64,000 nt of DNA from Macrostomum hystrix (lineage: Eukaryota > Animalia > Platyhelminthes), in the NCBI GenBank assembly GCA_950097015.1, contig CATNEN010000024.1, positions 6,076,001 through 6,140,000 on the forward strand, in the 5' to 3' direction. Positions 30,460-52,884 of this stretch are shown piece after piece; position 1 is the stretch's first letter, and each line of letters opens with the position of its first letter. Under the pieces are notes generated by a model, which saw nothing but the letters and a program-made list of their open reading frames with translations, did no database searches and was not told the origin of the DNA. The translations under genes were made by a program, and so were the position numbers.

Positions 30460-31323
30460 TCAGAAGAAGCTCGTCTCTTCGCCGCTTGTCAGCTCCGGAC
30501 AATGGCAGTAGTACTGCAGGGCCCTTTGCTGCTTCTGCTGTTGCTGTTGCTGTTGCTGCTGTTTCTGCTCCTGACCGCTCGGACTTCCTGCAGCGGTTGC
30601 CAAAGGCAACGACTGAAGCGAAGCTCTGGCCGAGGCCTGCGACTCCTCCAGCAGTTGACCGTAGAAGCCGCGCCGGATCCAGATCTCAGCCTCCGGCGTC
30701 TCCTGCTGCTGAGCCGCCTCCCGGCCGCCGATTGCGCGAGCTCGATTCCGCCGATGCGGCAGCGACATGGAGGTGGCCATGGCGGCACCCGCCTCATCAG
30801 CGCCAGCGGCAACGGTATCAATAGACTTGGCGCCGGCTGCTGCTGCTGCTGCTGCTGCGGGATATTCTCGACCAGGCGAGCTCACTGACTGCGGCTGCTC
30901 TATGGCCGATGCTCCCCCGATGCCACCGCCACCTCCGGCTACGCTGAGGCCGCTGTCCCCGCTGGGCAGGCTGCGAAGAGGTCGATAAAAAAATGCGGTC
31001 GGATCGGGACTCCGGCGCTGCTGCTGCTGCTGATTGTGCTGGTGCTGATAGTGATTCTGCTGGATTTGCTGAGGAAGGAAGTGCATCTGCTGTCCGTGAG
31101 GGTTCGGCCTAGGCGCGTACTCGCGCGTTGTGGGCGGCGTCAGAAAATCCGGTGATATCGGCGGTGGCGGCGACGACATTGACATCGAGGACGGCATCAT
31201 GAGCAGCGGCGGTGGAGGAGACGGCGGCAGGGAGACAACCAGCTCCGCGGTGCAGATGTCGTGCTCAACATCGGTGCCGACAGTTCGAACTGAATGGCAC
31301 ATCGGGCGACCGGCCTGTACGCA
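30460..31323 (-). CDS. NRG: neuregulin-like gene, last exon (cytoplasmic tail)
   Basis: Acceptor ...GTCAACAG, 288 codons to TGA at 30460, phase 0 with exon 31837-31897. Confidence 0.8.
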   Translation of the reverse strand, partial: CVQAGRPMCHSVRTVGTDVEHDICTAELVVSLPPSPPPPLLMMPSSMSMSSPPPPISPDFLTPPTTREYAPRPNPHGQQMHFLPQQIQQNHYQHQHNQQQQQRRSPDPTAFFYRPLRSLPSGDSGLSVAGGGGGIGGASAIEQPQSVSSPGREYPAAAAAAAAGAKSIDTVAAGADEAGAAMATSMSLPHRRNRARAIGGREAAQQQETPEAEIWIRRGFYGQLLEESQASARASLQSLPLATAAGSPSGQEQKQQQQQQQQQKQQRALQYYCHCPELTSGEETSFF

Positions 31324-34300
31324 CTGTTGACGCGGTGGCAGGGAGTTGAGCAGTGTTTGAGCAGTGTTTGATTAAAATGAATAATAATTGCAGGAGGGCT
31401 GCTTGCAATGACACATCATTGGGTGACACTAGACCCGCAGCCAGTGAGGAGGCAATTCTGCCCATTTCGCTGACTCCTGAGCACACACGCGCACAGATAC
31501 TGTACGCAGGCACACGCCCACACAGGTGTGTACATCTGCCACATCTGCTCATCGTCAGGCAGTGTACACTTCACTATGCCTTGGAGGTTCGCCACAAGGG
31601 CGTAAATTGCATGACAAGCCCCCAAGCCTTCTCTCCGCGGCTGCGCCCCAAATAAATGTGGCCTCGCCGTGGAATCGAACTCAAGGACATTGGTTGGAAA
31701 GTGAGACGCGATACTATTTATTCGATCGAAATAACAAAATCATGGCAAATGCTTTAGATTTTATGAAAAAATCTAAAATATTCTGACTGCTCTACTTATA
31801 GTAATCTACTGAGGAGTTGTTTGGTAAAATTCTCACTTTGCATCGCTCGTTTTCTCGTTTAGCCTGCCTCCAGAAGTCGAAATCGCGTCTGCGCTGCCTG
31901 AAACAAAAGTACGAGCGTAGATTTAGGCCTGGGTGAGCACAGATGAGTAGATACTGATGAGGCTCTCGCGTGGCTGTTTAGATCTAATCATCGGGATGTT
32001 CGCCGAATCTTCCATTGTTGGCTTTCTCTAGGCTGTTTTGTTAGAAAGTTTAACCTGGGCCTCATCAGGATGTCAACTTGTCAGGCGGCACGCGATGCCA
32101 AATTTGGGAATCTGAGCAGGCACTATGGGAGCAGGTGCCCGCAGGTGTGGGGACCCTAATCCGCTCATCAAGAGTGTCAGCTTTCGCTTCGGATAGTTTT
32201 TTTCGATTCGACTGTCAGGTTTGGCACGAATCTTCCCAACTCTGACATCAAGGCTTGGTGTATTGAGTGAGCTATGAACACAAATTAGTTTGTTCGAATG
32301 GAAAACGATTGTGAGTTGATTTTGAATTGCAAATTGCTTTCGAGAACTTTTAGCATGGCTTTGCTAGGGTTGAGTGGGTGCTAAATTATATGAGCTGGTG
32401 TGAGGGTAGGGTGTGTCATTCTAGGAATAGGGTGTGAGGGTGTGTCATTCTAGGAATAGGGTGTGAGGGTAGGGTGTGTCATTCTAGGAATAGGGTGTGA
32501 GGGTGTGTCATTCTAGGAATAGGGTGTGAGGGTAGGGTGTGTCATTCCAGGAATAGGGTGTGAGGGTGTGTCATTCTAGGAATAGGGTGTGAGGGTAGGG
32601 TGTGTCATTCCAGGAATAGGGTGTGAGGGTGTGTCATTCTAGGAATAGGGTGTGAGGGTAGGGTGTGTCATTCCAGGAATAGGGTGTGAGGGTAGGGTGT
32701 GTCATTCTAGGAATAGGGTGTGCGGGTAGGGTGTGTCATTCCAGGAATAGGGTGTGAGGGTAGGGTGTGTCATTCCAGGAATAGGGTGTGAGGGTAGGGT
32801 GTGTCATTCTAGGAATAGGGTGTGAGGGTAGGGTGTGTCATTCCAGGAATAGGGTGTGAGGGTAGGGTGTGTCATTCCAGGAATAGGGTGTGAGGGTAGG
32901 GTGTGTCATTCCAGGAACAGGGTGTGAGGGTAGGGTGTGTCATTCCAGGAACAGGGTGTGAGGGTAGGGTGTGTCATTCCAGGAATAGGGTGTGAGGGTA
33001 GGGTGTGTCATTCCAGGAATAGGGTGTGAGAGTAGGGTGTGTCATTCCAGGAATAGGGTGTGAGGGTAGGGTGTGTCATTCCAGGAATAGGGTGTGAGGG
33101 TAGGGTGTGTCATTCCAGGAATAGGGTGTGAGGGTAGGGTGTGTCATTCCAGGAATAGGGTGTGCGGGTAGGGTGTGTCATTCCAGGAATAGGGTGTGCG
33201 GGTAGGGTGTGTCATTCCAGGAATAGGATGTGAGGGTAGGGTGTGTCATTCCAGGAATAGGGTGTGAGGGTAGGGTGTGTCATTCCAGGAATAGGGTGTG
33301 AGGGTAGGGTGTGTCATTCCAGGAATAGGGTGTGAGAGTAGGGTGTGTCATTCCAGGAATAGGGTGTGAGGGTAGGGTGTGTCATTCCAGGAATAGGGTG
33401 TGAGGGTAGGGTGTGTCATTCCAGGAATAGGGTGTGAGGGTAGGGTGTGTCATTCCAGGAATAGGGTGTGAGGGTAGGGTGTGTCATTCCAGGAATAGGG
33501 TGTGCGGGTAGGGTGTGTCATTCCAGGAATAGGGTGTGAGGGTAGGGTGTGTCATTCCAGGAATAGGATGTGAGGGTAGGGTGTGTCATTCCAGGAATAG
33601 GATGTGAGGGTAGGGTGTGTCATTCCAGGAATAGGGTGTGAGGGTAGGGTGTGTCATTCCAGGAATAGGGTGTGAGAGTAGGGTGTGTCATTCCAGGAAT
33701 AGGGTGTGAGGGTAGGGTGTGTCATTCCAGGAATAGGGTGTGAGGGTAGGGTGTGTCATTCCAGGAATAGGGTGTGCGGGTAGGGTGTGTCATTCCAGGA
33801 ATAGGATGTGAGGGTAGGGTGTGTCATTCCAGGAATAGGGTGTGAGGGTAGGGTATGTCATTCCAGGAATAGGGTGTGAGGGTAGGGTGTGTCATTCCAG
33901 GAATAGGGTGTGAGGGTAGGGTGTGTCATTCCAGGAATAGGGTGTGAGAGTAGGGTGTGTCATTCCAGGAATAGGGTGTGAGGGTAGGGTGTGTCATTCC
34001 AGGAATAGGGTGTGAGGGTAGGGTGTGTCATTCCAGGAATAGGGTGTGAGGGTAGGGTGTGTCATTCCAGGAATAGGGTGTGAGGGTAGGGTGCGTCATT
34101 TCAGGAATAGGGTGTGAGGGTAGGGTGTGTCATTCCAGGAATAGGGTGTGAGGGTAGGGTGTGTCATTCCAGGAATAGGGTGTGAGGGTAGGGTGCGTCA
34201 TTTCAGGAATAGGGTGTGAGGGTAGTATGTGTCATTCCAGGAATAGGATGTGATAGTAGGGTCGGTCATTAAATGATCAGGATGTGATAGTAGGGTCGGT

Positions 34301-37300
34301 CATTAAATGATCCGAATGTGATAGTAGGGTCGGTCATTCAATGATCAGGATGTGAGGGTAGGGTCGGTCATTCCATGATCAGGGTGTGAGGGTAGGGTCG
34401 GTCATTCAATGATCAGGATGTGAGGGTAGGGTCGGTCATTCCATGATCAGGGTGTGAGGGTAGGGTCGGTCATTCCATGATCAGGGTGTGAGGGTAGGGT
34501 CGGTCATTCAATGATCAGGGTGTGAGGGTAGGGTCGGTCATTCCATGATCAGGGTGTGAGGGTAGGGTCGGTCATTCAATGATCCGAATGTGATAGTAGG
34601 GTCGGTCATTCAATGATCAGGGTGTGAGGGTGGGGTCGGTCATTCCATGATCGGGATGTGAGGGTCAGTCATAGAATGAATCATGGAATCCTGTCACACA
34701 GACCTTGACAAGTACCAGGAGATGAGCAGTATGAGCATGAGCATGGTGAGAACCAGTCCGATGCCAGTGACAGTGAGAATTCTGTCAGTTCGATGGAAGC
34801 AGTCTGAAATGAAAAGACGGGAGCTTTGGTTGTATTTGGTAGACACAGATTTAGAAAGCGAGCACAGAAAGGCGAACACTGACCCAGAACTTTGCCCTTG
34901 CAGGTCTCGGTGAAATTTTTATACGGCAGCATGTTCCTCTCGCACCGATCGCCGTGAAATGGATATGTGCAGCTGCAAAAGAATTTTTTTCTGCTTTGTT
35001 TGAACCTTCAAAGATACAAAAGTGAAATGAGCATGGATGAGCAATAGGCAATGCTCAAGCATCAACTACTCAACGAATCAATGCTAATCTCTACAAATCG
35101 ATGCTGAGCCATGGAAGGTGTCAGGGATAATTAGGCTAGAGGACACTGATCCCGGGTCAAACAATAGTTTATCCCCAGTGGGGAACACTCCTTTACTTTT
35201 TCCTAGCCCCTCGGGGAGAGAGAAAGACAGGAATTGATGATCCTAAGCATGGTCATATCCCACTAATCCCTTGTAGTAACAGTTTCTAGCACTGGTTTAA
35301 GATAGAAATCTTATCATTGCTCTGGCCAAGTTAGCTGAAATTAATTTCGCATTAATACTGAATGAGGGATTCACTCTGCTGCTGCTGCTGCTGCTGCTCA
35401 GCGTGACTTTCCTGTCATTCTATCTGTCATTCTCACTTATTCCTTTATCGATTTATTATTTGGCTTGACCAAGGAAAATTGCTAATATCTTAAAGAGGTC
35501 GCACGAAAATTAATGGCAAATCATGTGTAATTTCTGGCACTTGTTGGATTTTGAGTGTGGCAGAGCTGCCAACGCGTTTGCCTCGCACCAAGGTCCCTGA
35601 GCTCGATTCCGCGGCGAGGCCACATTCATTTGGGTCGCAGCCGCGAAGAGAAGGCTTGGGGCCTGTCGTGAAATTTACCCGATTGAGGGCCAACCTCCAA
35701 GGCACAGTGAGAGTGTACACTGCCTGACGATGAGAAAGTCAGGGCAGAGGTACACACCTGTGTGGGTGTGTGCTCAGGAGTCAGCGAAATGAGCAGAATT
35801 GCCTCCTTGCTGGCTAAATGTCGACTGTGACCAGAAGATGTGTCATTGCCCACAGCCCAATGACACATTGCCCATTGTGTCATTGCCCACAACCCAATTG
35901 CCCACAGCCCAATGGCACATTGCCCATTGTGTCATTGCCCACAGCCCAATTGCCCACAGCCCACAGCAAATATGAATATTAATTATGATTAATTTCTTGA
36001 TACTAGTTTTTGTCTGATCATCATGCTTGCTATATTTAAAACTATGAAAACAAGAAAAACACGACAAGCGTAGAAAATTGTGACATGAAGTAAGGAACAT
36101 AGGGATATTTTCTTGTCTTGGTATTTATCGTTTTTTAACTAATTAAAAAAGGAAGATTGATGACCTGAGATTCCTACTGGATTATAAACTATTTAAGGAA
36201 AATACTGAAGTAGTTTAATCGGTTTGTTAATCAGTTTCTACGGGGAAGCTTCAGTAATCCAGGTGTGAATGACAAACGACCCAGCTAGCCTATCTTACCA
36301 GCAACTCATTATCTCTTCGAGTTCAAGACCGATAAAATTTTGCGCTATAAGCCAGCCAGCGGAGCTTCATAACTCACGCAAACTCCTTGAAGCATTTCTC
36401 CCGCCTCCCTCTCTCGATTTCTCCATTCTTTTAGCAGTGGAGTCCTCAGGGCATGAAAGCTAGCAAGGCACGGAGGCTCAAATTATCATAATAGTACTCA
36501 AAGCTTTGCTGCTGAGTTGCCCATGCTGGGTGAGCTGCTTAGATTATGAAATTATAGGCTTTGGTCAAGCTATGCTAGCCAGCAGATCCGTAGTGAGTAC
36601 AACTAAACTTGTTAGATTTATTTATTCATAACTAATTAGCCCCATTCTAATACTGAAACTGAGCGGCATGCACTTTGAAGTAGAAAGGAAAATAGGAAAG
36701 AGAGAGGAAGATAATGAGAGAGGGTAAGAATGGGAGAGGGTAAGAATGAGAGGGTAGGAATGGGAGAGGGTAAGAATGGGAGAGGGTAAGAATGGGAGGG
36801 GTAAGAATGGGAGGGGGTAAGAATGGGAGAGGGTAAGAATGGGAGAGGGTAAGAATGGAAGAGGGTAAGAATGGAAGAGGGTAAGAATGGGAGTGGGTAA
36901 GAATGAGAGAGGGTAAGAATGGGAGGGGGTAAGAATGGGAGGGAGTAAGAATGAGGGAGGGTAAGAATGAGAGAGGGTAAGAATGGGAGAGGGTAAGAAT
37001 GGGAGAGGGTAAGAATGGGAGAGGGTAAGAATGGGAGGGGTAAGAATGGGAGGGGGTAAGAATGGGAGAGGGTAAGAATGGGAGAGGGTAAGAATGGGAG
37101 AGGGTAAGAATGGGAGAGGGTAAGAATGGGAGAGGGTAAGAATGGGAGGGGTAAGAATGGGAGGGGGTAAGAATGGGAGAGGGTAAGAATGGGAGAGGGT
37201 AAGAATGGGAGAGGGTAAGAATGGGAGAGGGTAAGAATGGAAGAGGGTAAGAATGGAAGAGGGTAAGAATGGAAGAGGGTAAGAATGAGAGAGGGTAAGA

Positions 37301-40300
37301 ATGAGAGAGGGTAAGAATGGGAGGGGGTAAGAATGGGAGGGAGTAAGAATGAGGGAGGGTAAGAATGGGAGAGGATAAGAATCAGAGAGGGTAAGAATGA
37401 GAGAGGGTAAGAATGAGAGAGGGTAAGAATGGGAGAGGGTAAGAATGAGAGAGGTTAAGAATGAGAGAGGGTAAGAATGAGAGAGGGTAAGAATCAGAGA
37501 GGGTAAGAATGAGAGAGGGTAAGAATGGGAGGGGGTAAGAATGGGAGGGAGTAAGAATGAGGGAGGGTAAGAATGGGAGAGGATAAAACAGAAAGAATGA
37601 GAGAGAAAGGGAGAGGGAGAGAGAGATGGAGACTGAGAGATATTTGAAAAAACGATCACTCCAAGTAACTGTAGCGAAGTGAAATTGTAGAGACAGAGTC
37701 ACACTGGCCATTGAGAGTGAGTTTTCTGTTGTTTAGCAGACTCTGCTCTGCCCTTAAGCAACTATAGTCTGTCACACAGAGACAAGTTTTGCATCCTGCT
37801 ATTGCACAACCGAAAGCAAACAGTAGTGCAAAACAAAGGAGAATTGTTAGTGCCAGGTCTGTCATTTTTTCCATTAATAAATTATCAGACAGAGATGCAG
37901 ATGTGAAAGAAAGCGTAAAAATTGCTTAATTTTTTTCTTTTTAGTTTAGCGCGGCCAATTCAATTGGCAACCAGCTTTTCTAGCTGATGATAAACTCACA
38001 CAACAATAATTATTGTATAGTATAGCAACTACCCTGTGTTTAAGGAAAATCATTAGAATCATTTTAAACTTGTCAAGTTGTCCACACTTGAACTCTTGGC
38101 TAAAATTGCTTTCTAATTTAGCTTGAATTCTTTGAAAAGAGTTTTTATCTCTTGAGTATGGCATCTCAAGTTGAGATCGATACCGATTCTGGTCAATTAA
38201 TTGCTAGCTTTCCATTCAAACTTGAAACTGGTCTTCTCTCCGCGTCTTACCGCGAAAACACATCGGCAAGAATTACCGAAGTCAGAAAAGCGAAAATTAG
38301 ATTTAAAAAGCGAATTACGGACTCACTTGCAGAATTTAATACCGCCAGGATAGCTGCTGCAGCTACCGTTGTGCAGGCAGTACTGGGCTGGGCACGACTC
38401 TGCGGAGTAGGTAAAGGCTCGAGTGAGTCAAGGCTTCAGTGAGTGAGTCAAGGCTTGAGTGAGTCAAGGCTTCAGTGAGTGAGTCAAGGCTCGAGTGAGT
38501 CAAGGCTCGAGTGAGTGAGTCAAGGCTCGAGTGAGTCAAGGCTTGAGTGAGTGAGTCAAGGCTTCAGTGAGTGAGTCAAGGCTCGAGTGAGTCAAGGCTC
38601 GAGTGAGTGAGTCAAGGCTTCAGTGAGTGAGTCAAGGCTCGAGTGAGTCAAGGTTCGAGTGAGTGAGTCAAGGCTTGAGTGAGTGAGTCAAGGCTTGAGT
38701 GAGTGAGTCAAGGCTTGAGTGAGTGAGTCAAGGCTTGAGTGAGTGAGTCAAGGCTTGAGTGAGTCAAGGCTTGAGTGAGTGAGTCAAGGCTTGAGTGAGT
38801 GAGTCAAGGCTTGAGTGAGTGAGTCAAGGCTTGAGTGAGTCAAGGCTTGAGTGAGTGAGTCAAGGCTCGAGTGAGTCAAGGCTTGAGTGAGTGAGTCAAG
38901 GCTCGAGTGAGTCAAGGCTTGAGTGAGTGAGTCAAGGCTTGAGTGAGTGAGTCAAGGCTTGAGTGAGTCAAGGCTTGAGTGAGTCAAGGCTTGAGTGAGT
39001 CAAGGCTTGAGTGAGTCAAGGCTTGAGTGAGTCAAGGCTTGAGTGAGTCAAGGCTTGAGTGAGTCAAGGCTTGAGTGAGTCAAGGCTTGAGTGAGTCAAG
39101 GCTTGAGTGAGTCAAGGCTTGAGTGAGTCAAGGCTTGAGTGAGTCAAGGCTTGAGTGAGTCAAGGCTTGAGTGAGTCAAGGCTTGAGTGAGTCAAGGCTT
39201 GAGTGAGTCAAGGCTTGAGTGATTGAGTCAAGGCTTCTATGAATGAGTCATAAAGTTCCAATGAGTGAGTCATTAGGACTTGTATGAATGAGTCGTAGAG
39301 ACCTAAAATTAATCCAAGTGAAGAGAAAAAGTTAATTTTTTGAAAATTAGCAATTAATTAATGAAAGTGACTTTAGAGTCTCATTGCGCGCACAGAGCAC
39401 TGGTACAAAATGGGTTTGCAAAAAGTGCTTCATAAGAAGTCCATAGACGATGCTTGGCACCCAACTGAATCCCAGAGCAGATGAGATGATGTGGTAGAGA
39501 CCTCCTGCCTGTTGCACCAATGTCCCCACAATCGCATATAATGTCCCGCCAGCATTGGGCCTACTAATCTGTGCAATTAGCTTGAAATGATCGGAAAGTC
39601 TTGGACCCACTTATTCGGCAGTTGATGGATTGGCTGGCTCAATAGATGTCAGTTAAAGATGGGAATGTAGAAATTTTCCTAGAAGCCGTCATCTTTAGGA
39701 ATCATTTTGAGTAGCTGAGCGAGCTCGGCTAGTCCGCAGTTCTTTGCCTTTTAAATTTCCCTTCGTTCAGTCTCTTTCCCCAGTCCTTCAGGGTGCCAGT
39801 CTCTTTCCCCAGTCCTTCAGGGTGTCAGTCTCTTTCCCTCCAGTTCTTCAGGGTGTCAGTCTCTTTCCCACCAGTCCTTCAGGGTGTCAGTCTCTTTCCC
39901 TCCAGTCCTTCAGGGTGTCAGTCTCTTTCCCACCAGTCCTTCAGGGTGTCAGTTCCTTTCCCACCAGTCCTTCAGGGTGTCAGTCTCTTTCCCACCAGTC
40001 CTTCAGGGTGTCAGTTCCTTTCCCACCAGTCCTTCAGGGTGTCAGTCTCTTTCCCACCAGTCCTTCAGGGTGTCAGTTCCTTTCCCACCAGTCCTTCAGG
40101 GTGTCAGTTACTTTGAAGAAGAACCAATAAATTATAATTGTGACATTTTCTCACCGTCAATGGCAGTTGGCGCTGTTGTGGTGAGGGGTACAGTTGGCAG
40201 AACAGATTGCACTAAAAATTAAATGTTTTAAATATGTTAATTTACACATATTTTCACTGAGATCTGATTGGTCAATGCATTTTGCACCAATTATAATCGG

Positions 40301-43300
40301 GTATGTACATAAATGTAAACATTTTTCAGTGTCACCTAACTTTTTGATTTCTGATTGGTCGATTCCAACTAGCCAATCAGAATAAGTGGGAAGGGTATCG
40401 ATGTACGAGTACAAAGAAATGTACACAAAAACTCGCTGTTTTCAAATCAGCGCAAAATTTTTATTTAGTAAATCTCCGACTTAATTTTTATTCTTAGCAC
40501 GAATTCTTGTTTGCCAACAGGATAAAATTGTTAAATATATTTTTCACCTGGACAAGCGGACAAGCGACACTTGACATTTGAGATCCCACTTTACAAAGTG
40601 TAGCTACACAAATTTAAGGAAAGAGCATATACGTACTTAGGCTTACCTGCAACGTAGACCCACTTCTGTATTGAGCCGTGATTGTTCTCAGCTTTGCAGG
40701 TGTAGTTGCCGGAGTCGCCAACAGTGATACGCGATACCTGCAGTGTAGACACCAGCTGCCTGGGAATGGGGTTTGGAAGTTTGGAAAGTTGGACAAATCG
40801 TGCTCCGATGCGTTTGTGAGATAAGCTTTGATTGAGGAAGTTGCATTCCATTCTCTCAGAAAACTCAGAGAGTTACATCCCATTCTCTCAGAAAACTCAG
40901 GGAGTTGCATCCCATTCCCTCAGAAAACTCAGGGAGTTACATCCCATTCTCTCAGAAAACTCAGGGAGTTGCATCCCATTCCCTCAGAAAACTCAGGGAG
41001 TTACATCCCATTCTCTCAGAAAACTCAGAGAGTTGCATTCCATTCCCTTAGAAAACTCAGGGAGTTGCATTCCATTCTCTTAGAAAACTCAGGGAGTTGC
41101 ATTCCATTCCCTTAGAAAACTCAGGGAGTTGCATTCCATTCTCTTAGAAAACTCAGAGAGTTGCATTCCATTCCCTTAGAAAACTCAGAGAGTTGCATTC
41201 CATTCCCTTAGAAAACTCAGGGAGTTACATCCCATTCTCTTAGAAAACTCAGAGAGTTGCATTCCATTCCCTTAGAAAACTCAGAGAGTTGCATTCCATT
41301 CCCTTAGAAAACTCAGGGAGTTGCATTCCATTCTCTTAGAAAACTCAGGGAGTTACATCCCATTCCCTTAGAAAACTCAGAGAGTTGCATTCCATTCCCT
41401 CAGAAAACTCAGGGAGTTGCATTCCATTCTCTCAGAAAACTCAGGGAGTTGCATTCCATTCTCTCAGAAAACTCAGGGAGTTGCATTCCATTCTCTCAGA
41501 AAACTCAGGGAGTTGCATTCCATTCTCTCAGAAAACTCAGGGAGTTGCATTCCATTCTCTTAGAAAACTCAGGGAGTTACATCCCATTCCCTTAGAAAAC
41601 TCAGAGAGTTGCATTCCATTCCCTTAGAAAACTCAGGGAGTTGCATCCCATTCTCTCAGAAAACTCAGGGAGTTGCATTCCATTCCCTCAGAAAACTCAG
41701 AGAGTTACATCCCATTCTCTTAGAAAACTCAGGGAGTTGCATTCCATTCCCTTAGAAAACTCAGGGAGTTGCATTCCATTCCCTTAGAAAACTCAGGGAG
41801 TTGCATTCCATTCCCTTAGAAAACTCAGGGAGTTGCATTCCATTCCCTTAGAAAACTCAGGGAGTTGCATTCCATTCCCTTAGAAAACTCAGGGAGTTGC
41901 ATTCCATTCCCTTAGAAAACTCAGAGAGTTGCATTCCATTCCCTTAGAAAACTCAGAGAGTTGCATCCCATTCTCTCAGAAAACTCAGGGAGTTGCATTC
42001 CATTCCCTTAGAAAACTCAGGGAGTTGCATTCCATTCCCTTAGAAAACTCAGGGAGTTGCATTCCATTCCCTTAGAAAACTCAGGGAGTTGCATTCCATT
42101 CCCTTAGAAAACTCAGGGAGTTGCATCCCATTCTCTTAGAAAACTCAGGGAGTTACATCCCATTCTCTCAGAAAACTCAGGGAGTTGCATTCCATTCCCT
42201 CAGAAAACTCAGGGAGTTGCATTCCATTCTCTCAGAAAACTCAGGGAGTTGCATTCCATTCCCTTAGAAAACTCAGAGAGTTACATCCCATTCTCTCAGA
42301 AAACTCAGGGAGTTGCATTCCATTCTCTCAGAAAACTCAGGGAGTTGCATTCCATTCTCTGAGAAAACTCAGGGAGTTGCATTCCATTCTCTCAGAAAAT
42401 TCAGGGAGTTGCATCCCATTCTCTCAGAAAACTCAGGGAGTTGCATTCCATTCTCTCAGAAAACTCAGGGAGTTGCATTCCATTCCCTTAGAAAACTCAG
42501 AGAGTTGCATTCCATTCCCTTAGAAAACTGAGAGAGTTGCATTCCATTCCCTTAGAAAACTGAGAGAGTTGCATTCCATTCCCTTAGAAAACTCAGGGAG
42601 TTGCATTCCATTCTCTTAGAAAACTCAGGGAGTTACATCCCATTCCCTTAGAAAACTCAGAGAGTTGCATTCCATTCCCTTAGAAAACTCAGGGAGTTGC
42701 ATCCCATTCTCTTAGAAAACTCAGAGAGTTGCATTCCATTCCCTCAGAAAACTCAGAGAGTTGCATTCCATTCCCTTAGAAAACTCAGGGAGTTGCATTC
42801 CATTCCCTTAGAAAACTCAGGGAGTTGCATTCCATTCCCTTAGAAAACTCAGGGAGTTGCATTCCATTCCCTTAGAAAACTCAGGGAGTTGCATTCCATT
42901 CCCTTAGAAAACTCAGGGAGTTGCATTCCATTCCCTTAGAAAACTCAGGGAGTTGCATCCCATTCTCTTAGAAAACTCAGGGAGTTGCATTCCATTCCCT
43001 TAGAAAACTCAGAGAGTTACATTCCATTCTCTTAGAAAACTCAGGGAGTTGCATCCCATTCTCTCAGAAAACTCAGGGAGTTGCATTCCATTCTCTCAGA
43101 AAACTCAGGGAGTTGCATCCCATTCTCTCAGAAAACTCAGGGAGTTGCATTCCATTCCCTTAGAAAACTCAGGGAGTTGCATCCCATTCTCTTAGAAAAC
43201 TCAGGGAGTTGCATTCCATTCTCTCAGAAAACTCAGAGAGTTGCATCCCATTCTCTCAGAAAACTCAGGGAGTTGCATTCCATTCCCTTAGAAAACTCAG

Positions 43301-46300
43301 GGAGTTGCATTCCATTCCCTTAGAAAACTCAGGGAGTTGCATTCCATTCCCTTAGAAAACTCAGGGAGTTGCATTCCATTCCCTTAGAAAACTCAGGGAG
43401 TTGCATCCCATTCTCTTAGAAAACTCAGGGAGTTGCATTCCATTCTCTCAGAAAACTCAGGGAGTTGCATTCCATTCCCTTAGAAAACTCAGGGAGTTAC
43501 ATCCCATTCTCTCAGAAAACTCAGGGAGTTGCATCCCATTCTCTCAGAAAACTCAGGGAGTTGCATTCCATTCCCTCAGAAAACTCAGGGAGTTGCATTC
43601 CATTCTCTCAGAAAACTCAGGGAGTTGCATTCCATTCCCTTAGAAAACTCAGAGAGTTACATCCCATTCTCTCAGAAAACTCAGGGAGTTGCATTCCATT
43701 CTCTCAGAAAACTCAGGGAGTTGCATTCCATTCTCTGAGAAAACTCAGGGAGTTGCATTCCATTCTCTCAGAAAATTCAGGGAGTTGCATCCCATTCTCT
43801 CAGAAAACTCAGGGAGTTGCATTCCATTCTCTCAGAAAACTCAGGGAGTTGCATTCCATTCCCTTAGAAAACTCAGAGAGTTGCATTCCATTCCCTTAGA
43901 AAACTGAGAGAGTTGCATTCCATTCCCTTAGAAAACTCAGGGAGTTGCATTCCATTCTCTTAGAAAACTCAGGGAGTTACATCCCATTCCCTTAGAAAAC
44001 TCAGAGAGTTGCATTCCATTCCCTTAGAAAACTCAGGGAGTTGCATCCCATTCTCTCAGAAAACTCAGGGAGTTGCATTCCATTCCCTCAGAAAACTCAG
44101 AGAGTTACATCCCATTCTCTTAGAAAACTCAGGGAGTTGCATTCCATTCCCTTAGAAAACTCAGGGAGTTGCATTCCATTCCCTTAGAAAACTCAGGGAG
44201 TTGCATTCCATTCCCTTAGAAAACTCAGGGAGTTGCATTCCATTCCCTTAGAAAACTCAGGGAGTTGCATTCCATTCCCTTAGAAAACTCAGGGAGTTGC
44301 ATTCCATTCCCTTAGAAAACTCAGGGAGTTGCATTCCATTCCCTTAGAAAACTCAGGGAGTTGCATTCCATTCCCTTAGAAAACTCAGGGAGTTGCATCC
44401 CATTCCCTTAGAAAACTCAGGGAGTTGCATTCCATTCCCTTAGAAAACTCAGGGAGTTGCATTCCATTCCCTTAGAAAACTCAGGGAGTTGCATTCCATT
44501 CCCTTAGAAAACTCAGAGAGTTACATTCCATTCTCTTAGAAAACTCAGGGAGTTACATCCCATTCTCTTAGAAAACTCAGGGAGTTGCATTCCATTCCCT
44601 TAGAAAACTCAGGGAGTTGCATTCCATTCCCTCAGAAAACTCAGAGAGTTACATCCCATTCTCTTAGAAAACTCAGGGAGTTGCATTCCATTCCCTTAGA
44701 AAACTCAGGGAGTTGCATTCCATTCCCTTAGAAAACTCAGGGAGTTGCATTCCATTCCCTTAGAAAACTCAGGGAGTTGCATTCCATTCCCTTAGAAAAC
44801 TCAGGGAGTTGCATTCCATTCCCTTAGAAAACTCAGGGAGTTGCATCCCATTCTCTTAGAAAACTCAGGGAGTTGCATTCCATTCCCTTAGAAAACTCAG
44901 AGAGTTACATTCCATTCTCTCAGAAAACTCAGGGAGTTGCATCCCATTCTCTCAGAAAACTCAGGGAGTTGCATTCCATTCTCTCAGAAAACTCAGGGAG
45001 TTGCATTCCATTCTCTGAGAAAACTCAGGGAGTTGCATTCCATTCTCTCAGAAAATTCAGGGAGTTGCATCCCATTCTCTCAGAAAACTCAGGGAGTTGC
45101 ATTCCATTCTCTCAGAAAACTCAGGGAGTTGCATCCCATTCTCTCAGAAAACTCAGGGAGTTGCATTCCATTCCCTTAGAAAACTCAGAGAGTTGCATTC
45201 CATTCTCTCAGAAAACTCAGGGAGTTGCATTCCATTCCCTTAGAAAACTCAGAGAGTTGCATTCCATTCCCTTAGAAAACTCAGAGAGTTGCATTCCATT
45301 CCCTTAGAAAACTCAGGGAGTTGCATTCCATTCCCTTAGAAAACTCAGGGAGTTGCATCCCATTCTCTTAGAAAACTCAGGGAGTTGCATTCCATTCTCT
45401 CAGAAAACTCAGGGAGTTGCATTCCATTCCCTTAGAAAACTCAGGGAGTTACATCCCATTCTCTCAGAAAACTCAGGGAGTTGCATCCCATTCTCTCAGA
45501 AAACTCAGGGAGTTGCATTCCATTCCCTCAGAAAACTCAGGGAGTTGCATTCCATTCTCTCAGAAAACTCAGGGAGTTGCATCCCATTCTCTCAGAAAAC
45601 TCAGGGAGTTGCATTCCATTCCCTCAGAAAACTCAGGGAGTTGCATTCCATTCTCTCAGAAAACTCAGGGAGTTACATCCCATTCCCTTAGAAAACTCAG
45701 AGAGTTGCATTCCATTCCCTTAGAAAACTCAGGGAGTTGCATCCCATTCTCTCAGAAAACTCAGGGAGTTGCATTCCATTCCCTCAGAAAACTCAGGGAG
45801 TTACATCCCATTCTCTTAGAAAACTCAGGGAGTTGCATTCCATTCCCTTAGAAAACTCAGAGAGTTACATTCCATTCTCTTAGAAAACTCAGGGAGTTGC
45901 ATTCCATTCCCTTAGAAAACTCAGAGAGTTACATTCCATTCTCTTAGAAAACTCAGGGAGTTGCATCCCATTCTCTCAGAAAACTCAGGGAGTTGCATTC
46001 CATTCTCTCAGAAAACTCAGGGAGTTGCATTCCATTCCCTTAGAAAACTCAGGGAGTTGCATCCCATTCTCTCAGAAAACTCAGGGAGTTGCATTCCATT
46101 CCCTTAGAAAACTCAGAGAGTTACATCCCATTCTCTCAGAAAACTCAGGGAGTTGCATTCCATTCTCTCAGAAAACTCAGGGAGTTGCATTCCATTCTCT
46201 CAGAAAACTCAGGGAGTTGCATTCCATTCCCTTAGAAAACTCAGGGAGTTGCATTCCATTCTCTCAGAAAACTCAGGGAGTTGCATTCCATTCTCTCAGA

Positions 46301-49300
46301 AAACTCAGGGAGTTGCATCCCATTCTCTCAGAAAACTCAGGGAGTTGCATTCCATTCCCTTAGAAAACTCAGGGAGTTGCATCCCATTCTCTCAGAAAAC
46401 TCAGGGAGTTGCATCCCATTCTCTCAGAAAACTCAGGGAGTTGCATTCCATTCCCTCAGAAAACTCAGGGAGTTGCATTCCATTCTCTCAGAAAACTCAG
46501 GGAGTTGCATTCCATTCCCTTAGAAAACTCAGAGAGTTACATCCCATTCTCTCAGAAAACTCAGGGAGTTGCATTCCATTCTCTGAGAAAACTCAGGGAG
46601 TTGCATTCCATTCTCTCAGAAAATTCAGGGAGTTGCATCCCATTCTCTCAGAAAACTCAGGGAGTTGCATTCCATTCTCTCAGAAAACTCAGGGAGTTGC
46701 ATTCCATTCTCTCAGAAAATTCAGGGAGTTGCATCCCATTCTCTCAGAAAACTCAGGGAGTTGCATCCCATTCTCTCAGAAAACTCAGGGAGTTGCATTC
46801 CATTCTCTCAGAAAACTCAGGGAGTTGCATTCCATTCTCTCAGAAAATTCAGGGAGTTGCATTCCATTCCCTTAGAAAACTCAGAGAGTTGCATTCCATT
46901 CTCTCAGAAAACTCAGGGAGTTGCATCCCATTCTCTCAGAAAACTCAGGGAGTTGCATCCCATTCTCTCAGAAAACTCAGGGAGTTGCATTCCATTCCCT
47001 TAGAAAACTCAGGGAGTTGCATCCCATTCTCTCAGAAAACTCAGGGAGTTGCATCCCATTCTCTCAGAAAACTCAGGGAGTTGCATTCCATTCCCTTAGA
47101 AAACTCAGGGAGTTGCATTCCATTCTCTCAGAAAACTCAGGGAGTTGCATTCCATTCTCTCAGAAAACTCAGGGAGTTGCATTCCATTCCCTTAGAAAAC
47201 TCAGAGAGTTGCATCCCATTCTCTCAGAAAACTCAGGGAGTTGCATTCCATTCTCTCAGAAAACTCAGGGAGTTGCATTCCATTCCCTCAGAAAACTCAG
47301 AGAGTTACATATTCTAGCTTTACTCTAAAGTTGGCGCGCACGCAAAGCATTCCAGCCCTTCAGTTCTCTACAGTGAAGTCCGCAACCAATTGGCAGAACT
47401 GCAGAGGCTGTCCATGAGAATCCGGGCTCAACAGGGAATCCGAAACCATCCCCACCCGAAACTTCGGTCTCAGCTGGGTCTCAATTCTCTGATCCCGCAT
47501 CCAATGGTCTCCGCTAGCCCGGACCTTCGGAGAATCAATCCCTCAAAGCGATCGTTAAGTCCCCTATTAATTGGCGGATTTCGGGTGCTAGGGGGAATCA
47601 TGGTACGCGTGTCTGCCGATTTCTTAGAAACGCGTCACTTTACGCGCGAGAGCATCTCTGACGATTCATTACTGTACAGGGGTTGTGCCATGATTTGGCC
47701 GGACAGAACTCTTGGATTCGATGTCACATGTAATTCTATGTCGTTAATACGAGTTGACGAAACTGTTTTTTAAAGGCCTTTTTCAATCCAATGCTTCCTA
47801 TTTTATTGTGCAGTCCGAAAAAAGGCAATCTGAAACCTGAAACTGAAACTGAATCTGAATCTGAATCCGAATCCGAATCTGAATCTGAATCTGAATCTGA
47901 ATCCGAATCCGAATCTGAATCTGAATCCGAATCCGAATCTGAATCTGAATCTGAATCTGAATCTGAATCCGAATCTGAATCCGAAATCGTGGTCCGAATT
48001 CGGGATCTCGGTCGCTCTGTACTAAATACGGCTCAGAGGCCACTCGTTGAGGAGTCACTGAGCGGGCGCAGGTGGCAACCGTTGCTAGGAAAACTATTAG
48101 CACTGGAAAATTCCCAGATACTCTCGCACCCGGCGGGCGAGCTTAATGACGGCAGTTCCTTCAGGAGAACCTTGGCAACGTCTTCTGAAGGACGGCAGAG
48201 CATAAAAAGACAGCGTCTGACGCTGAAACACAAACACACTTGCAAGCCAGCTCATCCAACTTAATCATAGGCCTTTGAGCAGTGCGCGTGTGCGTGCTCA
48301 AACTGAGTCTATTTGAGTCGATGGGGGTTCAAATTTAGTCAGATATTACCTCTATGCAAGAATTGAGCATTTCAAAGGACCCCGCATGCAGTCCGCATTG
48401 TCTGAGCAGCTCTTAGCCATTATTTTGCTAACTAGTAAAACAAAAAACAAATTATTAAAACAATAATTTAGTTTTAATCCTAAATAGAGTTTTCATTTGT
48501 GAAACTTATGAGAACTTGTGTAATGAGTACAGTGCAGCACAGAGAATGGGAGCCTTCAAGCTGGTCTTGGTCAGCTGGCTGCAATTTGCGCGCTCTGGAT
48601 CGAATTTCAGATTGTTGTCAATGCGATGGGGTTGAGAAAATGGAGAAAAATTGCCTTGCGAGGCTGATTGGTCTGAGAGAATGCTCCGGCTGCCGCTGTG
48701 AGTCTCTACTCCACCATGTCTCTTGAACTGAACCTGTCCTTCTCCCTTTCCTTCTCCCTGCCCTTCTCCCTGCCCTTCTCCCTGCCCTTCTCCCTGCCCT
48801 TCTCCCTGCCCTTCTCCCTGCCCTTCTCCCTGCCCTTCTCCCTGCCCTTCTCCCTGTCCTTCTCCCTGCCCTTCTCCCTGCCCTTCTCCCTGCCCTTCTC
48901 CCTGTCCTTCTCCCTGCCCTTCTCCCTGCCCTTCTCCCTGTCCTACTCCCTGTCCTTCTCCCTGTCCTTCTCCCTGTCCTACTACCTGTCCTTCTCCCTG
49001 TCCTTCTCCCTGTCCTACTCCCTGTCCTTCTCCCTGTCCTACTCCCTGTCCTACTCCCTGTCCTTCTCCCTGTCCTACTCCCTGTCCTTCTCCCTGTCCT
49101 TCTCCCTGCCCTTCTCCCTGCCCTTCTCCCTGCCCTTCTCCCTGCCCTTCTCCCTGCCCTTCTCCCTGCCCTTCTCCCTGCCCTTCTCCCTGCCCTTCTC
49201 CCTGCCCTTCTCCCTGCCCTTCTCCCTGTCCTTCTCCCTGTCCTTCTCCCTGCCCTTCTCCCTGTCCTTCTCCCTGTCCTTCTCCCTGTCCTTCTCCCTG

Positions 49301-52300
49301 TCCTACTCCCTGTCCTTCTCCCTGTCCTACTCCCTGTCCTACTCCCTGTCCTTCTCCCTGTCCTACTCCCTGTCCTTCTCCCTGTCCTTCTCCCTGTCCT
49401 TCTCCCTATCCTTCTCCCTGTCCTTCTCCCTGTCCTACTCCCTCCTCTTCTCTTGTCGCCGCATCTTAACTCTTTCTTTCTCTCTCATTAACAAAATATT
49501 TTTAGTTTGAGAGCTCGAACCGCACCAGAAATTCTCAGCAACGCACTCCCAAAGCAGACGGACTAAAACTTTAAGCAGCCCCCGCTCATCCCCTCAAAGG
49601 TGTGTCAACTCCACCTTCAAGCCACCAGCCAGGCGCCCGCTTTCTCCGCCCCACATGCTGTGAAACTCCGCCAGCTGCTGGGGGTTGTCACTTGTGCTGG
49701 GTCGGCCGTAACAGCGGAAGACAAGACAGAAAAGGTGGCTAGTCATAGTTCCTACAGTTGGCATTGAGCACTACTCAACTACTCATGACTCAAGTGAACC
49801 AGTCTATGCAAGCGCTCGATTCGAAGGTACTTAGCGCCAAAATATAGTGAGAGACAGAGGAGAAAGAAAATGAGCCTATAGAGAGAAAGATTATAGTGAG
49901 AACTGTGGGTGCTTGTCGGCTAGCCTGACAAGCAGTTCACGTTTCAACTCCACTTGTTCTACTGGTGTGTGTGGTGTAAGTGTTTTTTTCCCGAATTTTC
50001 AATATTGAAGTCAGACGTGCGAAGGAATGACCGGCAACTCTGTTGATTTTCTTCCTGCCACTGAACTCAGCGGCTAACCTGCCACTCAGTCTCACCACAC
50101 TGAGACCGTCCCACCGTCTCTTTGCCTCACTCTCACCCGTTCAGCCTTTGTCTCACCCTCTCGCCCTCTCGCCCTGTATCTCTTGGTCTGGCACTCTATC
50201 TCTTGGTCTCGCCCACTATCTCTTGGCCTCTCCCTCTCGCCCTCTATCTCTCGCCCTCTATCTCTCACCCTCTATCTCTCACCCTCTATCTCTCACCCTC
50301 TATCTCTCGCCCTTTATCTCTCGCCCTCTATCTCTCGCCCTCTATCTCTCGCTCTCTATCGCTCGCTCTCTATCTCTCGCTCTCTATCTCTCGCCCTCTC
50401 CCTCTCGCCCCTATCTCTCGCCCTCTCCCTCTCGCCCCTATCTCTCGCCCTCTATCTCTCGCTCTCTATCTCTCGCCCTCTCGCCCATTTTTCGGTTTTC
50501 TCGCTCTCGCTCCTACTTTTGTTGTATCTTCCAGTCATCTATAAAATATATGAAACTCAGACTTAAGACTGACATGCCCGAACTCATAAAATCCAATATT
50601 TTTAAATCAGACAAGAGGGGATTTGAAGCTGCAAGTACACTTTAGTGCATTTAGCATTGTATCATTTGTGCGGATTGTAAATGCATTTTGAGATCAGTTG
50701 ATAAAGTGTCTCATTGGCGATGGGTCGATAGAAATGTGAAGAAAATTATGCTCAGAGAAGCGGTGCTGGTGATGAGTGCTAGGGCATAGAATTACAATTA
50801 TCTACAGTCAAATCAGAGCAAACCAGAAAGGTAGCTATCAGTAACCTGGATTTTCCAACACTTTATTTTTTTGCACAAAAGGAAACGTTTATAAAAACAC
50901 ATTAAACCTTCCACTGGTTTGATGCATATCAGTGTGGCTGCAATGCGATCTGTGCTAAGCGGTTTGGCATCTCAGAGATTAGTAGCGAATAAAATTTTCC
51001 AACATTTAGTACATCTTCAATTCAACTGAGAATAGGAGATTGAGAAATCTAGGCACCAAGCTAAAATGTGAGATTAACCCGATTGGGTCAAGAACTGAGG
51101 GAACAATGTAGAGTGCATTGTGAGAGAGAGTGAGGGAGAGTGACAGTGAGTGAGTTAGAGTGACAGTGAGTGAGTTAGAGTGACAGTAAGTGAGGTAGAG
51201 CGACAATGAGTGAGGCAAAGTGACAGTGAGTGAGGTAGAGTGACATTAGGGAGGTAAGTGACAGTGAGTGAGGGAGAGTGACATTGAGTGAGGTAGAGTG
51301 ACATTAGGTGAGGTAAGTGACAGTGAGTGAGGGAGAGTGGCAGTGAGTGAGGTAGAGTGACATTAGGTGAGGTAAGTGACAGTGAGTGAGGTAGAGTGAC
51401 ATTGAGTGAGGTAGAGTGACAGTGAGTGAGGGAGAGTGACAGTGAGTGAGGTAGAGTGACAGTGAGTGAGGTAGAGTGACAGTGAGTGAGGTAGAGTGAC
51501 ATTAGGGAGGTAAGTGACAGTGAGTGAGGTAGAGTGACATAAGGTGAGGTAAGTGACAGTGAGTGAGGGAGAGTGGCAGTGAGTGAGGTAGAGTGACATT
51601 AGGTGAGGTAAGTGACAGTGAGTGAGGGAGAGTGACGGTGAGTGAGGTAGAGTGACAGTGAGTGAGGTAGAGTGACAGTGAGTGAGGTAGAGTGACATTA
51701 GGGAGGTAAGTGACAGTGAGTGAGGGAGAGTGACAGTGAGTGAGGTAGAGTGACAGTGAGTGAGGTAGAGTGACATTAGGGAGGTAAGTGACAGTGAGTG
51801 AGGGAGAGTGACATTGAGTGAGGTAGAGTGACATTAGGTGAGGTAAGTGACAGTGAGTGAGGGAGAGTGGCAGTGAGTGAGGTAGAGTGACATTAGGTGA
51901 GGTAAGTGACAGTGAGTGAGGTAGAGTGACAGTGAGTGAGGTAGAGTGACATTAGGGAGGTAAGTGACAGTGAGTGAGGGAGAGTGACGGTGAGTGAGGT
52001 AGAGTGACAGTGAGTGAGGTAGAGTGACAGTGAGTGAGGTAGAGTGACAGTGAGTGAGGTAGAGTGACATTAGGGAGGTAAGTGACAGTGAGTGAGGGAG
52101 AGTGACATTGAGTGAGGTAGAGTGACATTAGGTGAGGTAAGTGACAGTGAGTGAGGGAGAGTGGCAGTGAGTGAGGTAGAGTGACATTAGGTGAGGTAAG
52201 TGACAGTGAGTGAGGGAGAGTGGCAGTGAGTGAGGTAGAGTGACATTAGGTGAGGTAAGTGACAGTGAGTGAGGGAGAGTGGCAGTGAGTGAGGTAGAGT

Positions 52301-52884
52301 GACATTAGGTGAGGTAAGTGACAGTGAGTGAGGGAGAGTGACATGAGTGAGTAAGAGTGCAGAAGAGTGAGGGAGAGTGACAGTGAGTGAGGGAGAGTGA
52401 CAGTGAGTGAGGGAGAGTGACAGTGAGTGAGGGAGAGTGACAGTGAGTGAGGGAGAGTGACATTGAGTGAGGGAGAGTGACAGTGAGTGAGGGAGAGTGA
52501 CAGTGAGTGAGGGAGAGTGACAGTGAGTGAGGGAGAGTGACAGTGAGTGAGGGAGAGTGACAGTGAGTGAGGGAGAGTGACAGTGAGTGAGGGAGAGTGA
52601 CAGTGAGTGAGGGAGAGTGACAGTGAGTGAGTAAGAGTTCAGAAGAGTGAGGGAGAGTGAGACAGAGTTCCTGACAGCAGAGTAACGGACTCACTGGGAC
52701 TCCTGGTCCGTATTTTCCTCCTGCTGCACATTGACATTCTCCTTCATGACGAGGTCGCGGCCGCCCCGGCTCCACACAATCTTGGGGTTGGGCTTGCCCC
52801 TCGCCCGGCACTTCACAATGAGCGTCTTGCCTTCGCCGATGTTGATACTGTTCTGAATCGGGTACACTACTTCCGGCTCAGAGG
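30460..52884 (-). CDS. NRG: neuregulin/vein-like EGFR ligand precursor (Ig I-set + EGF + TM + cytoplasmic tail), core 8 exons
   Basis: Phase-compatible GT-AG exons: 52884-52695 (Ig N-half, [14 protein letters not shown]), 40759-40647 (Ig C-half, [11 protein letters not shown]), 40211-40155 (Thr/Pro stalk), 38399-38327 (EGF C1-C4), 34972-34884 ([11 protein letters not shown]), 34803-34704 ([27 protein letters not shown]), 31897-31837 and 31323-30460 (Pro/Gln-rich tail, stop). The TM motif resembles the neuregulin RVLTITGI motif. Confidence 0.88.
31378..31705 (-). mobile_element. SINE family B copy
   Basis: Aligns with 22686-23065. Its tail ends about 55 nt upstream of the last neuregulin acceptor. 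Confidence 0.85.
32400..34668. repeat. 34-bp minisatellite in two subtypes (AGGGTGTGTCATTCCAGGAATAGGGTGTGAGGGT, then AGGGTCGGTCATTCAATGATCAGGGTGTGAGGGT)
   Basis: About 54 copies of subtype 1 to about 34230, then about 13 of subtype 2. Confidence 0.96.
34704..34972 (-). CDS. NRG: neuregulin-like gene: EGF C-terminal exon (34884-34972) and TM exon (34704-34803)
   Basis: [29 protein letters not shown] / [34 protein letters not shown], separated by an 80-nt GT-AG intron. Confidence 0.9.
35555..35850 (+). mobile_element. SINE family B copy
   Basis: Contains CACCAAGGTCCCTGAGCTCGATTCC and the shared body; the tail runs into a short tandem repeat to about 35965. Confidence 0.85.
36715..37585. repeat. 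15/16-bp minisatellite (AGAGGGTAAGAATGGG)
   Basis: About 55 tandem copies in the intron that splits the EGF domain. Confidence 0.95.
38327..38399 (-). CDS. NRG: neuregulin-like gene: EGF N-terminal exon
   Basis: CCGCAG acceptor, [25 protein letters not shown]|GTGAGT donor; phases 1 and 2 fit both neighbouring exons. Confidence 0.9.
38415..39236. repeat. 16/20-bp minisatellite (GAGTGAGTCAAGGCTT)
   Basis: About 45 tandem copies starting about 15 nt from the EGF exon acceptor. Confidence 0.96.
39768..40108. repeat. 31-bp minisatellite (CCAGTCCTTCAGGGTGTCAGTCTCTTTCCCA)
   Basis: About 11 tandem copies. Confidence 0.93.
40155..40759 (-). CDS. NRG: neuregulin-like gene: Ig C-half exon (40647-40759) and stalk exon (40155-40211)
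   Basis: [37 protein letters not shown] / [19 protein letters not shown], with canonical splice sites. Confidence 0.88.
40843..47310. repeat. 6.5-kb 32-bp satellite (GAAAACTCAGGGAGTTGCATTCCATTCTCTCA)
   Basis: About 200 tandem copies with a few recurrent variant positions, inside the intron that splits the Ig domain. Confidence 0.97.
47836..47985. repeat. (GAATCT/GAATCC)n hexamer repeat
   Basis: About 25 copies. Confidence 0.95.
48735..49445. repeat. 12-bp pyrimidine-rich minisatellite (CTTCTCCCTGCC/CTTCTCCCTGTC)
   Basis: About 59 copies. Confidence 0.95.
50155..50485. repeat. 14-bp minisatellite (TCTATCTCTCGCCC)
   Basis: About 23 degenerate copies. Confidence 0.9.
51122..52670. repeat. 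compound GTGACAGTGAGTGAG(G)-based minisatellite
   Basis: Interleaved units AGAGTGACAGTGAGTGAGGG/GT and AGTGACATTAGGTGAGGTA; begins about 25 nt after the Ig exon donor. Confidence 0.95.
52695..52884 (-). CDS. NRG: neuregulin-like gene: Ig N-half exon
   Basis: [41 protein letters not shown]; TTTGCAG acceptor and CA|GTGAGT donor. Confidence 0.9.

Follow-up and report, generated by a model that had tools for sequence, protein, structure and literature searches.

In the flatworm Macrostomum hystrix, a stretch of 64,000 nucleotides (nt) of contig CATNEN010000024.1 (assembly GCA_950097015.1, positions 6,076,001 to 6,140,000), hereafter the window, carries on its minus strand, from 52884 down to 30460, a split gene that probably encodes a neuregulin-type ligand of the epidermal growth factor (EGF) receptor family. 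Eight exons were recognised by direct reading, splice motifs and phase arithmetic; all have AG acceptors and GT donors, and the phases run unbroken from the first to the last (Table 1). They encode in order an immunoglobulin (Ig) domain, a stalk, an EGF module, a transmembrane (TM) helix and a cytoplasmic tail, and this layout, proposed in the initial annotation as eight phase-compatible exons, is confirmed by the splice sites, the phases and a transcript-derived coding sequence (CDS) of Macrostomum lignano. The eight exons are coding exons 2 to 9 and form the main body of an intact gene.

Table 1. Exons of the window gene, with protein identity to the M. lignano protein PAA60932.1 and to the paralogs of M. 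hystrix; a slash marks an exon border
Exon	Coordinates	Strand	Length	Phase in	Phase out	Content and splice sites	Identity to PAA60932.1	Identity to paralogs
IgA	52884..52695	minus	190 nt	1	2	N-terminal half of I-set Ig, strands A' to D; donor CA/GTGAGT	92% (ortholog residues 8-71)	61-73% (acceptor and donor conserved)
IgB	40759..40647	minus	113 nt	2	1	C-terminal half of Ig, strands E to G	87%	70-87%
Stalk	40211..40155	minus	57 nt, 19 codons	1	1	Thr/Pro-rich	68% (ortholog residues 109-127, within its CDS)	poorly conserved
EGF-N	38399..38327	minus	73 nt	1	2	Cys1 to Cys4; donor AA/GTGAGT	87%	
EGF-C	34972..34884	minus	89 nt	2	1	Cys5, Cys6 and extracellular juxtamembrane stretch	91%	50-66% (acceptor cag/C TGC conserved)
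TM	34803..34704	minus	100 nt	1	2	second extra Cys, 'HRTDR', 23-residue membrane helix	100%	91-97% (synonymous sites 47-74% different)
Juxtamembrane	31897..31837	minus	61 nt	2	0	basic, cytoplasmic	90%	83-94%
Tail	31323..30463	minus	861 nt, 287 codons	0		last exon, low-complexity cytoplasmic; TGA stop at 30462..30460	63% with indels (ortholog residues 236-551), fixing the acceptor as caacag/TGC	

Together the exons comprise 1,544 nt; one further base, supplied by an upstream exon, completes 515 codons. From 5' to 3', the introns measure 11,935, 435, 1,755, 3,354, 80, 2,806 and 513 nt, and the first and fourth of them, which split the Ig domain and the EGF module, have the lengths of 11.9 and 3.35 kb that had been claimed for them. 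The stalk exon is in phase 1 on both sides, so that the frame is kept if it is skipped, and the juxtamembrane exon was first recognised as a block of DNA conserved against three paralogs. Such an exon set is far beyond chance, because a protein of M. lignano aligns to every exon in order, and because the three paralogs keep the exons, the splice positions and the phases while their introns do not align.

Ig, EGF and membrane modules

Domain and homology searches were run on single exons or on open reading frames (ORFs), and for full-length comparisons the natural M. lignano protein was used in place of the window product. The Pfam I-set profile matches IgA over its positions 8-55 (E 1.3e-8), and the ig/I-set profiles match the open frame around IgB over positions 56-84 (E 4e-6); since the second match takes up the profile where the first leaves it, the two exons encode consecutive halves of one Ig domain. 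The whole ortholog contains one I-set domain (3e-16, profile positions 8-89). The profile is continuous across the IgA/IgB junction only with a short IgB exon, DNA conservation of IgB with all paralogs and with M. lignano begins at 40762, and an AG acceptor is found at the equivalent site in all five sequences (the window, the three paralogs and M. lignano), which by sequence conservation places the true IgB acceptor at 40759. An alternative acceptor at 40825, an in-phase AG that would add 22 codons, was rejected, as it is conserved in no paralog and is not used by the ortholog.

The EGF module, which is divided between EGF-N and EGF-C, has six cysteines in the pattern C-x4-C-x5-C-x9-C-x-C-x8-C, kept in the ortholog and in the paralogs. 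The intron between its halves (38326..34973) splits a single codon between Cys4 and Cys5 (TGC AA/gt...ag/C TGC), and its position is identical in M. lignano, including the CDS of that species, and in the paralogs inspected (the donor in C3 and the acceptor in C35, named here by contig). An arginine precedes Cys6 in every copy: the window reads F-H-G-D-R-C, the ortholog and two paralogs read G-D/E-R-C, and the remaining paralog reads G-V-R-C. From Cys6, 27 residues lead to the start of the membrane helix (ILTVTG...), and the part of this stretch encoded by EGF-C contains a conserved N-x-S/T sequon (N-x-T in the window) and an extra cysteine. That cysteine is one of two (T-C-KGKVLD-C-F, window 34884-34803) that lie between the EGF module and the membrane and are kept in four paralogs and in the ortholog; the pair may close a small disulfide loop where shedding is likely to take place. 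A second EGF-C exon of the kind that distinguishes NRG1 alpha from beta was not found in the gene region, where EGF-C is the sole such exon.

An AlphaFold2 single-sequence model of the ortholog is poor overall, with a mean predicted local distance difference test score (pLDDT) of 47, and the TM helix is its sole confident part (pLDDT 81-94). The tail is of low complexity with conserved short motifs, ends in ETSFF, and gives no Pfam match.

Conservation in M. lignano and in three paralogs

With the open frame around IgB as the query, a single M. lignano cluster of two members was retrieved. One of these, PAA60932.1 (UniProt A0A267EJI3), is a protein of 551 amino acids (aa) recorded as 'hypothetical protein BOX15_Mlig018232g1' or as an Ig-like domain-containing protein. 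In a tblastn comparison with the window it matches all eight exons in order, and its residues at the junctions are those predicted from the phases (Q, V, D/E, N, D and R). It has the same nine-part layout, the same flanking genes and the same tail motifs as the window gene, with the C-terminus ...EETSFF. The GenBank annotation of M. lignano was built from an RNA-seq-guided transcriptome (StringTie/TACO and de novo assembly, with ORFs called by TransDecoder; PMC5730564), and the exon joins are therefore RNA-derived in that species.

Upstream, both species have a TMTC-like gene (27-29 kb past the window end in M. hystrix); downstream, both have a fatty-acid hydroxylase gene (window exon 28015-28154, 88.6% DNA identity). 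With these conserved neighbours, the window gene is the positional ortholog of the M. lignano gene. Between the two, exon DNA is 83-88% identical, the introns are unalignable and synonymous sites are near saturation, with a proportion of nonsynonymous differences (pN) of 0.047, a proportion of synonymous differences (pS) of 0.63 and a ratio of the corresponding rates (dN/dS) of 0.036. The gene is under strong purifying selection. No mention of Mlig018232 as a neuregulin, or of further Macrostomum ligands, was found in the papers searched.

The other member of the cluster is UniProt A0A1I8HZ81, a 90-aa protein that starts in the frame of the Ig intron, links IgB to the stalk and EGF-N, and continues past the EGF-N donor to a stop (…FCK, stop); this donor is conserved in the C3 paralog and in M. 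lignano. The suspicion that automated annotation had fragmented the gene is thus correct for this one entry, while the RNA-based GenBank model is whole. The fragment is the representative of its 90% cluster, and the full-length protein is hidden behind it from length-limited searches. Accordingly, a homolog search with ortholog residues 1-240 gave no match, the cluster representative being a 90-aa fragment outside the length range, and a length-limited search with the 303-aa tail frame gave none either, the ortholog at 551 aa being just above the limit. A whole-library phmmer search with IgA was swamped by giant multi-Ig proteins.

When single exons were searched against the whole 220-Mb assembly, three further colinear loci were found, on contigs C3, C35 and C39. 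DNA comparison with these paralogs gives signal at the exons only, and all copies agree in the codon position and phase of their splice sites. With pS of 0.58-0.75 and pN of 0.14-0.17 in the paralog comparisons, synonymous sites are near saturation while the proteins are held together, which identifies the copies, as judged from their sequences, as old paralogs under selection and not as recent copies or products of gene conversion. The dN/dS ratio is 0.13-0.17 against the C35 and C39 paralogs; the third paralog is too saturated for an estimate. The tail motifs of the window gene recur in the tails of the paralogs and in NRG-2 of the polyclad Prostheceraeus vittatus; the tail must therefore be coding, and what is kept between flatworm orders is a series of short motifs set in a low-complexity matrix. 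At two conserved sites the paralogs have GC in place of GT at the donor, namely AG/GCAAGA in the TM exon of C39 (L015) and CAG/GCAAGC in the juxtamembrane exon of C35 (L012); these are probably GC-AG introns.

Probable assignment as a neuregulin-type ligand

Stein and Staros described ErbB ligands by three marks: the EGF module is interrupted by a splice site between Cys4 and Cys5, it lies beside the TM segment, and an arginine precedes Cys6 (PMC1618406). All three features are present in the window gene, and the earlier remark that an intron between Cys4 and Cys5 is typical of ErbB ligands agrees with that published rule. In the usage of Barberan et al. 2016, an 'NRG-type' protein combines EGF, I-set Ig and TM (PMC4914847); the window gene has the I-set Ig domain, the EGF cysteine pattern and a TM exon whose helix is confident in the ortholog model. 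On the side of function, the one precedent is the flatworm NRG-type ligand EmNRG, which binds the EGF receptors EmER1/2 in Echinococcus (PMC12963305). The window gene is thus likely, on the evidence of its sequence, to be an intact neuregulin-type pro-ligand of the EGF-receptor family, with receptor binding as a prediction.

Among described proteins, P. vittatus NRG-2 (PMC4914847 supplement) comes closest; the comparison is one of motifs, read by eye in the optical character recognition text of that supplement. Both proteins are without a signal peptide, both have the Ig end ...KKWVFLAV and a 4-residue first EGF loop, and a similar extra pair of cysteines precedes the membrane in P. vittatus NRG-2. 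The TM segment of the latter (DRTLTYVGIGL...ISWFMARQRR) and its 'ARQRR' stretch are in common with the window gene, and its tail motifs SVRTVGVDV, PLRSMPSGES and AEIWI have the shared forms SVRTVG-D, PLRS-PSG-S and AEIWI. Although P. vittatus belongs to a distant flatworm order and overall identity is far lower, the motifs place the two proteins in the same subfamily. The published M. lignano NRG, Smed-nrg-1 (whose silencing by RNA interference affects regeneration) and EmNRG are of the same class by architecture but of a different subfamily. The M. lignano NRG already in the literature carries a signal peptide and an extended N-terminal domain, and its EGF module, TM segment and tail are unrelated to those of the window gene, which is therefore an additional, unreported NRG-type gene of Macrostomum.

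The initial annotation had described the combination of Ig, EGF and TM with an RxLTxTGI start of the TM segment as a neuregulin/vein architecture, of which the neuregulin half stands. The Ig-containing NRG1 and NRG2 of vertebrates are likewise membrane-anchored pro-ligands with an Ig domain, a glycosylated spacer, one EGF module and a TM segment, and the TM start D-R-I-L-T-V-T-G-I of the window gene resembles KRVLTITGIC of human NRG1/2 (in amphioxus NRG also K-R-V-L-T/A-I-T-G-I), while several invertebrate NRGs have D-R-V/L-I/T-T-I (PMC4914847 supplement). Unlike vertebrate NRG1/2, the window gene has a first EGF loop of 4 instead of 7 residues, one EGF-C exon instead of the alpha/beta pair, two extra juxtamembrane cysteines, and flatworm-specific tail motifs in place of the Neuregulin intracellular domain (PF02158). 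Vein does not fit the architecture as described, because it has no TM segment. It is also an Ig and EGF ligand, with the Cys4/Cys5 splice site in all species (PMC1618406), and its EGF module (C-NFDY-C-FHNGT-C...C-R-C-PTEYFGNR-C), with a 4-residue first loop, has a pattern much like that of the window module ('C-LHNGS-C'); yet it is a secreted protein that has a signal peptide and a long N-terminal region but neither TM nor tail (PMC4914847 supplement). Secretion of the Vein type is not matched in the window gene, whose TM exon is highly conserved and whose ortholog is without a signal peptide.

The product would be a membrane-anchored protein with the Ig domain, the stalk and the EGF module outside the cell; the part inside would consist of a basic stop-transfer stretch followed by a long disordered tail. 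An orientation with the N-terminus outside is suggested by the conserved N-x-S/T sequons, the Thr/Pro-rich stalk and the basic residues that follow the helix. Vertebrate NRG1 type I, the Ig-neuregulin, has no signal peptide and is inserted with its N-terminus outside by its TM segment. The Macrostomum protein is probably inserted in the same way, without a cleaved signal peptide and with the TM segment as an internal signal, because the ortholog starts with MAAEPLEA and runs straight into the Ig domain. An EGF receptor would then meet the EGF module while it is still anchored in the membrane, or once it has been released by cleavage within the 27-residue juxtamembrane stretch, and the conserved motifs of the tail may serve sorting or signalling within the ligand-bearing cell. 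This mode of action, drawn by analogy from the architecture, the biology of NRG1 and the receptor binding of EmNRG, is probably correct.

Several observations weigh against the assignment. Pfam finds no EGF domain, of the ligand type or otherwise, on the whole ortholog, and the Neuregulin intracellular domain is absent from the window tail and from the whole ortholog at E values up to 10. When EGF-N and EGF-C were searched against solved structures, the sole result was a generic EGF-like match to protein Z, and only Ig domains were among the matches listed for the whole ortholog. The Cys1-Cys2 and Cys3-Cys4 loops, with 4 and 9 residues, are both shorter than in mammalian ligands, and the additional cysteine pair near the membrane is a further departure. 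Stein and Staros also listed proteins not known as ligands whose EGF modules have the Cys4/Cys5 splice site (PMC1618406), and the ESM Atlas neighbours of the EGF-TM part, all of them EGF families and to be taken as a lead only, include Delta-homolog and Notch-like clusters alongside two pro-neuregulin-4 clusters. From several of these points one could argue for a real gene whose product is an Ig and EGF-like membrane protein acting elsewhere than on EGF receptors, for example in adhesion or in other signalling. Such a function is unlikely, as the published hallmarks occur all together (a single EGF module, the Cys4/Cys5 splice site, proximity to the membrane and the sequence aromatic-x-G-x-R-C), the TM start and the order of Ig, EGF and TM match NRG-type ligands of many phyla, and a flatworm protein of this type does bind EGF receptors. 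The 4-residue first loop is moreover found in Vein and in P. vittatus NRG-2.

The remaining objections concern the locus. In M. hystrix the exon joins rest on the ortholog and on conservation, the introns are swollen with satellites, and a counterpart of the first coding exon was found neither in the window nor in the 30 kb past the window end. A silent or decaying window copy, with only the copies elsewhere in the genome in use, would agree with these points, but it is very improbable: none of the eight exons is interrupted and all are bounded by canonical splice sites, the window locus and not one of the paralogs is syntenic with the expressed M. lignano gene, and nonsynonymous change since the split from M. 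lignano has remained far below synonymous change. It is harder still to credit that the exons belong to two adjacent genes, one for an Ig protein and one for an EGF-TM protein, that are merely joinable. The Ig exons could splice directly to many phase-1 acceptors, and the UniProt fragment stops after EGF-N; that fragment, however, itself joins IgB, the stalk and EGF-N, the RNA-derived 551-aa CDS joins all exons, and the exon order is identical at four loci. A single intact gene for a neuregulin-type pro-ligand is the preferred reading.

In flatworms, stem cells and regeneration are under the control of EGF-receptor signalling, and Macrostomum is the flatworm model with working transgenesis. 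The result is a solid annotation and not a surprise, since the kind of gene is known, the ortholog has been deposited without a name in M. lignano and a polyclad relative has been described; it does not change the understanding of how such ligands work. The sole survey of Macrostomum ligands gave one EGF-like and one neuregulin-like gene. With the window locus and its three paralogs, the NRG-type repertoire of Macrostomum is larger and comprises at least 4 genes of this subfamily, one of which, labelled 'hypothetical protein', is expressed in M. lignano, together with a second quartet of related TM exons. These genes are concrete candidates for ligand pairing with the expanded EGF receptors.

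The second quartet consists of exons with a similar membrane anchor ('RRLDRIMTAVGLTIAG...LLLSWYLAR') at C35:630633-630848, C3:5740240-5740374, C39:6547552-6547683 and C24:6245313-6245456 (loci L005-L007). Each of the four contigs that bear a paralog also bears one of these exons, the C24 copy about 105 kb past the window end, and a joint duplication of two related ligand subfamilies is possible. A bolder proposal, possible though rather doubtful, is that Macrostomum has a whole unreported subfamily of 'NRG-2-type' ligands without signal peptides, made up of the four old paralogs and the second anchor quartet, with tail motifs (C-terminal S-F-F) in common with polyclads. If true, this would suggest that the tail has a conserved role within the ligand-bearing cell, in sorting or reverse signalling, and that the set of ligands expanded alongside the many EGF receptors of the worm.

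First coding exon and intron repeats

The gene model is without a start codon, and the first coding exon lies outside the eight-exon call. In M. lignano this exon has 22 nt, encoding MAAEPLE plus one base (G), and is situated 17 kb upstream of IgA. Nothing convincing was obtained for M. hystrix when DNA of the M. lignano 5' region was compared with the whole genome, when a degenerate pattern of exon 1 was sought in the window, or when short-word BLAST and fuzzy matching were applied over 41 kb upstream. A weak, unsupported candidate ('MSSMTEE' followed by G/GTAAGA) lies on the minus strand at coordinate ~77548 (L021), about 13.5 kb past the window end, and matches the M. lignano exon ('MAAEPLE' followed by G/GTGAGA) in length and phase only; a comparable unsupported candidate ('MEAANYTKFE' followed by G/GTGAGA) is present 5.5 kb upstream of IgA in the C3 paralog.

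Tandem Repeats Finder detects ten tandem arrays inside the gene, which occupy 60.6% of the 22.4-kb span, compared with 6.9% for the exons; among them are a 32-nt unit in 202 copies (40835-47310) and a 34-nt unit in 67 copies. The Ig-splitting intron (40760..52694) is mostly made of such arrays, and its length is attributed to satellite growth because the homologous intron measures only 1.5-3.7 kb in the three paralogs. The 32-nt satellite (94% matches) generates dozens of spurious plus-strand ORFs of 48-300 aa, which dominate the local ORF list. ORF-based views miss the gene because its introns are inflated by satellites and by an interspersed repeat, and the locus is a clean case of satellite-inflated introns (60% of the gene) hiding exons of 57-190 nt.

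Past the stop codon, a tRNA-like stretch was considered and proved not to be a tRNA, and Rfam gave nothing in the gene region. A block in the last intron, 87% identical and considered as a conserved regulatory element, was rejected as such, being instead a copy of an interspersed repeat with thousands of copies. This repeat, of about 335 nt and without an Rfam or tRNA match, is found in the last intron (31380-31713) and in the EGF intron (35626-35892), and also at L019:15254-15507 and 38578-38815. It has more than 3,000 candidate copies genome-wide, of which the 40 scored, the query's own copy aside, are all 90-94% identical, and both the paralogs and the M. lignano ortholog have copies in their introns.

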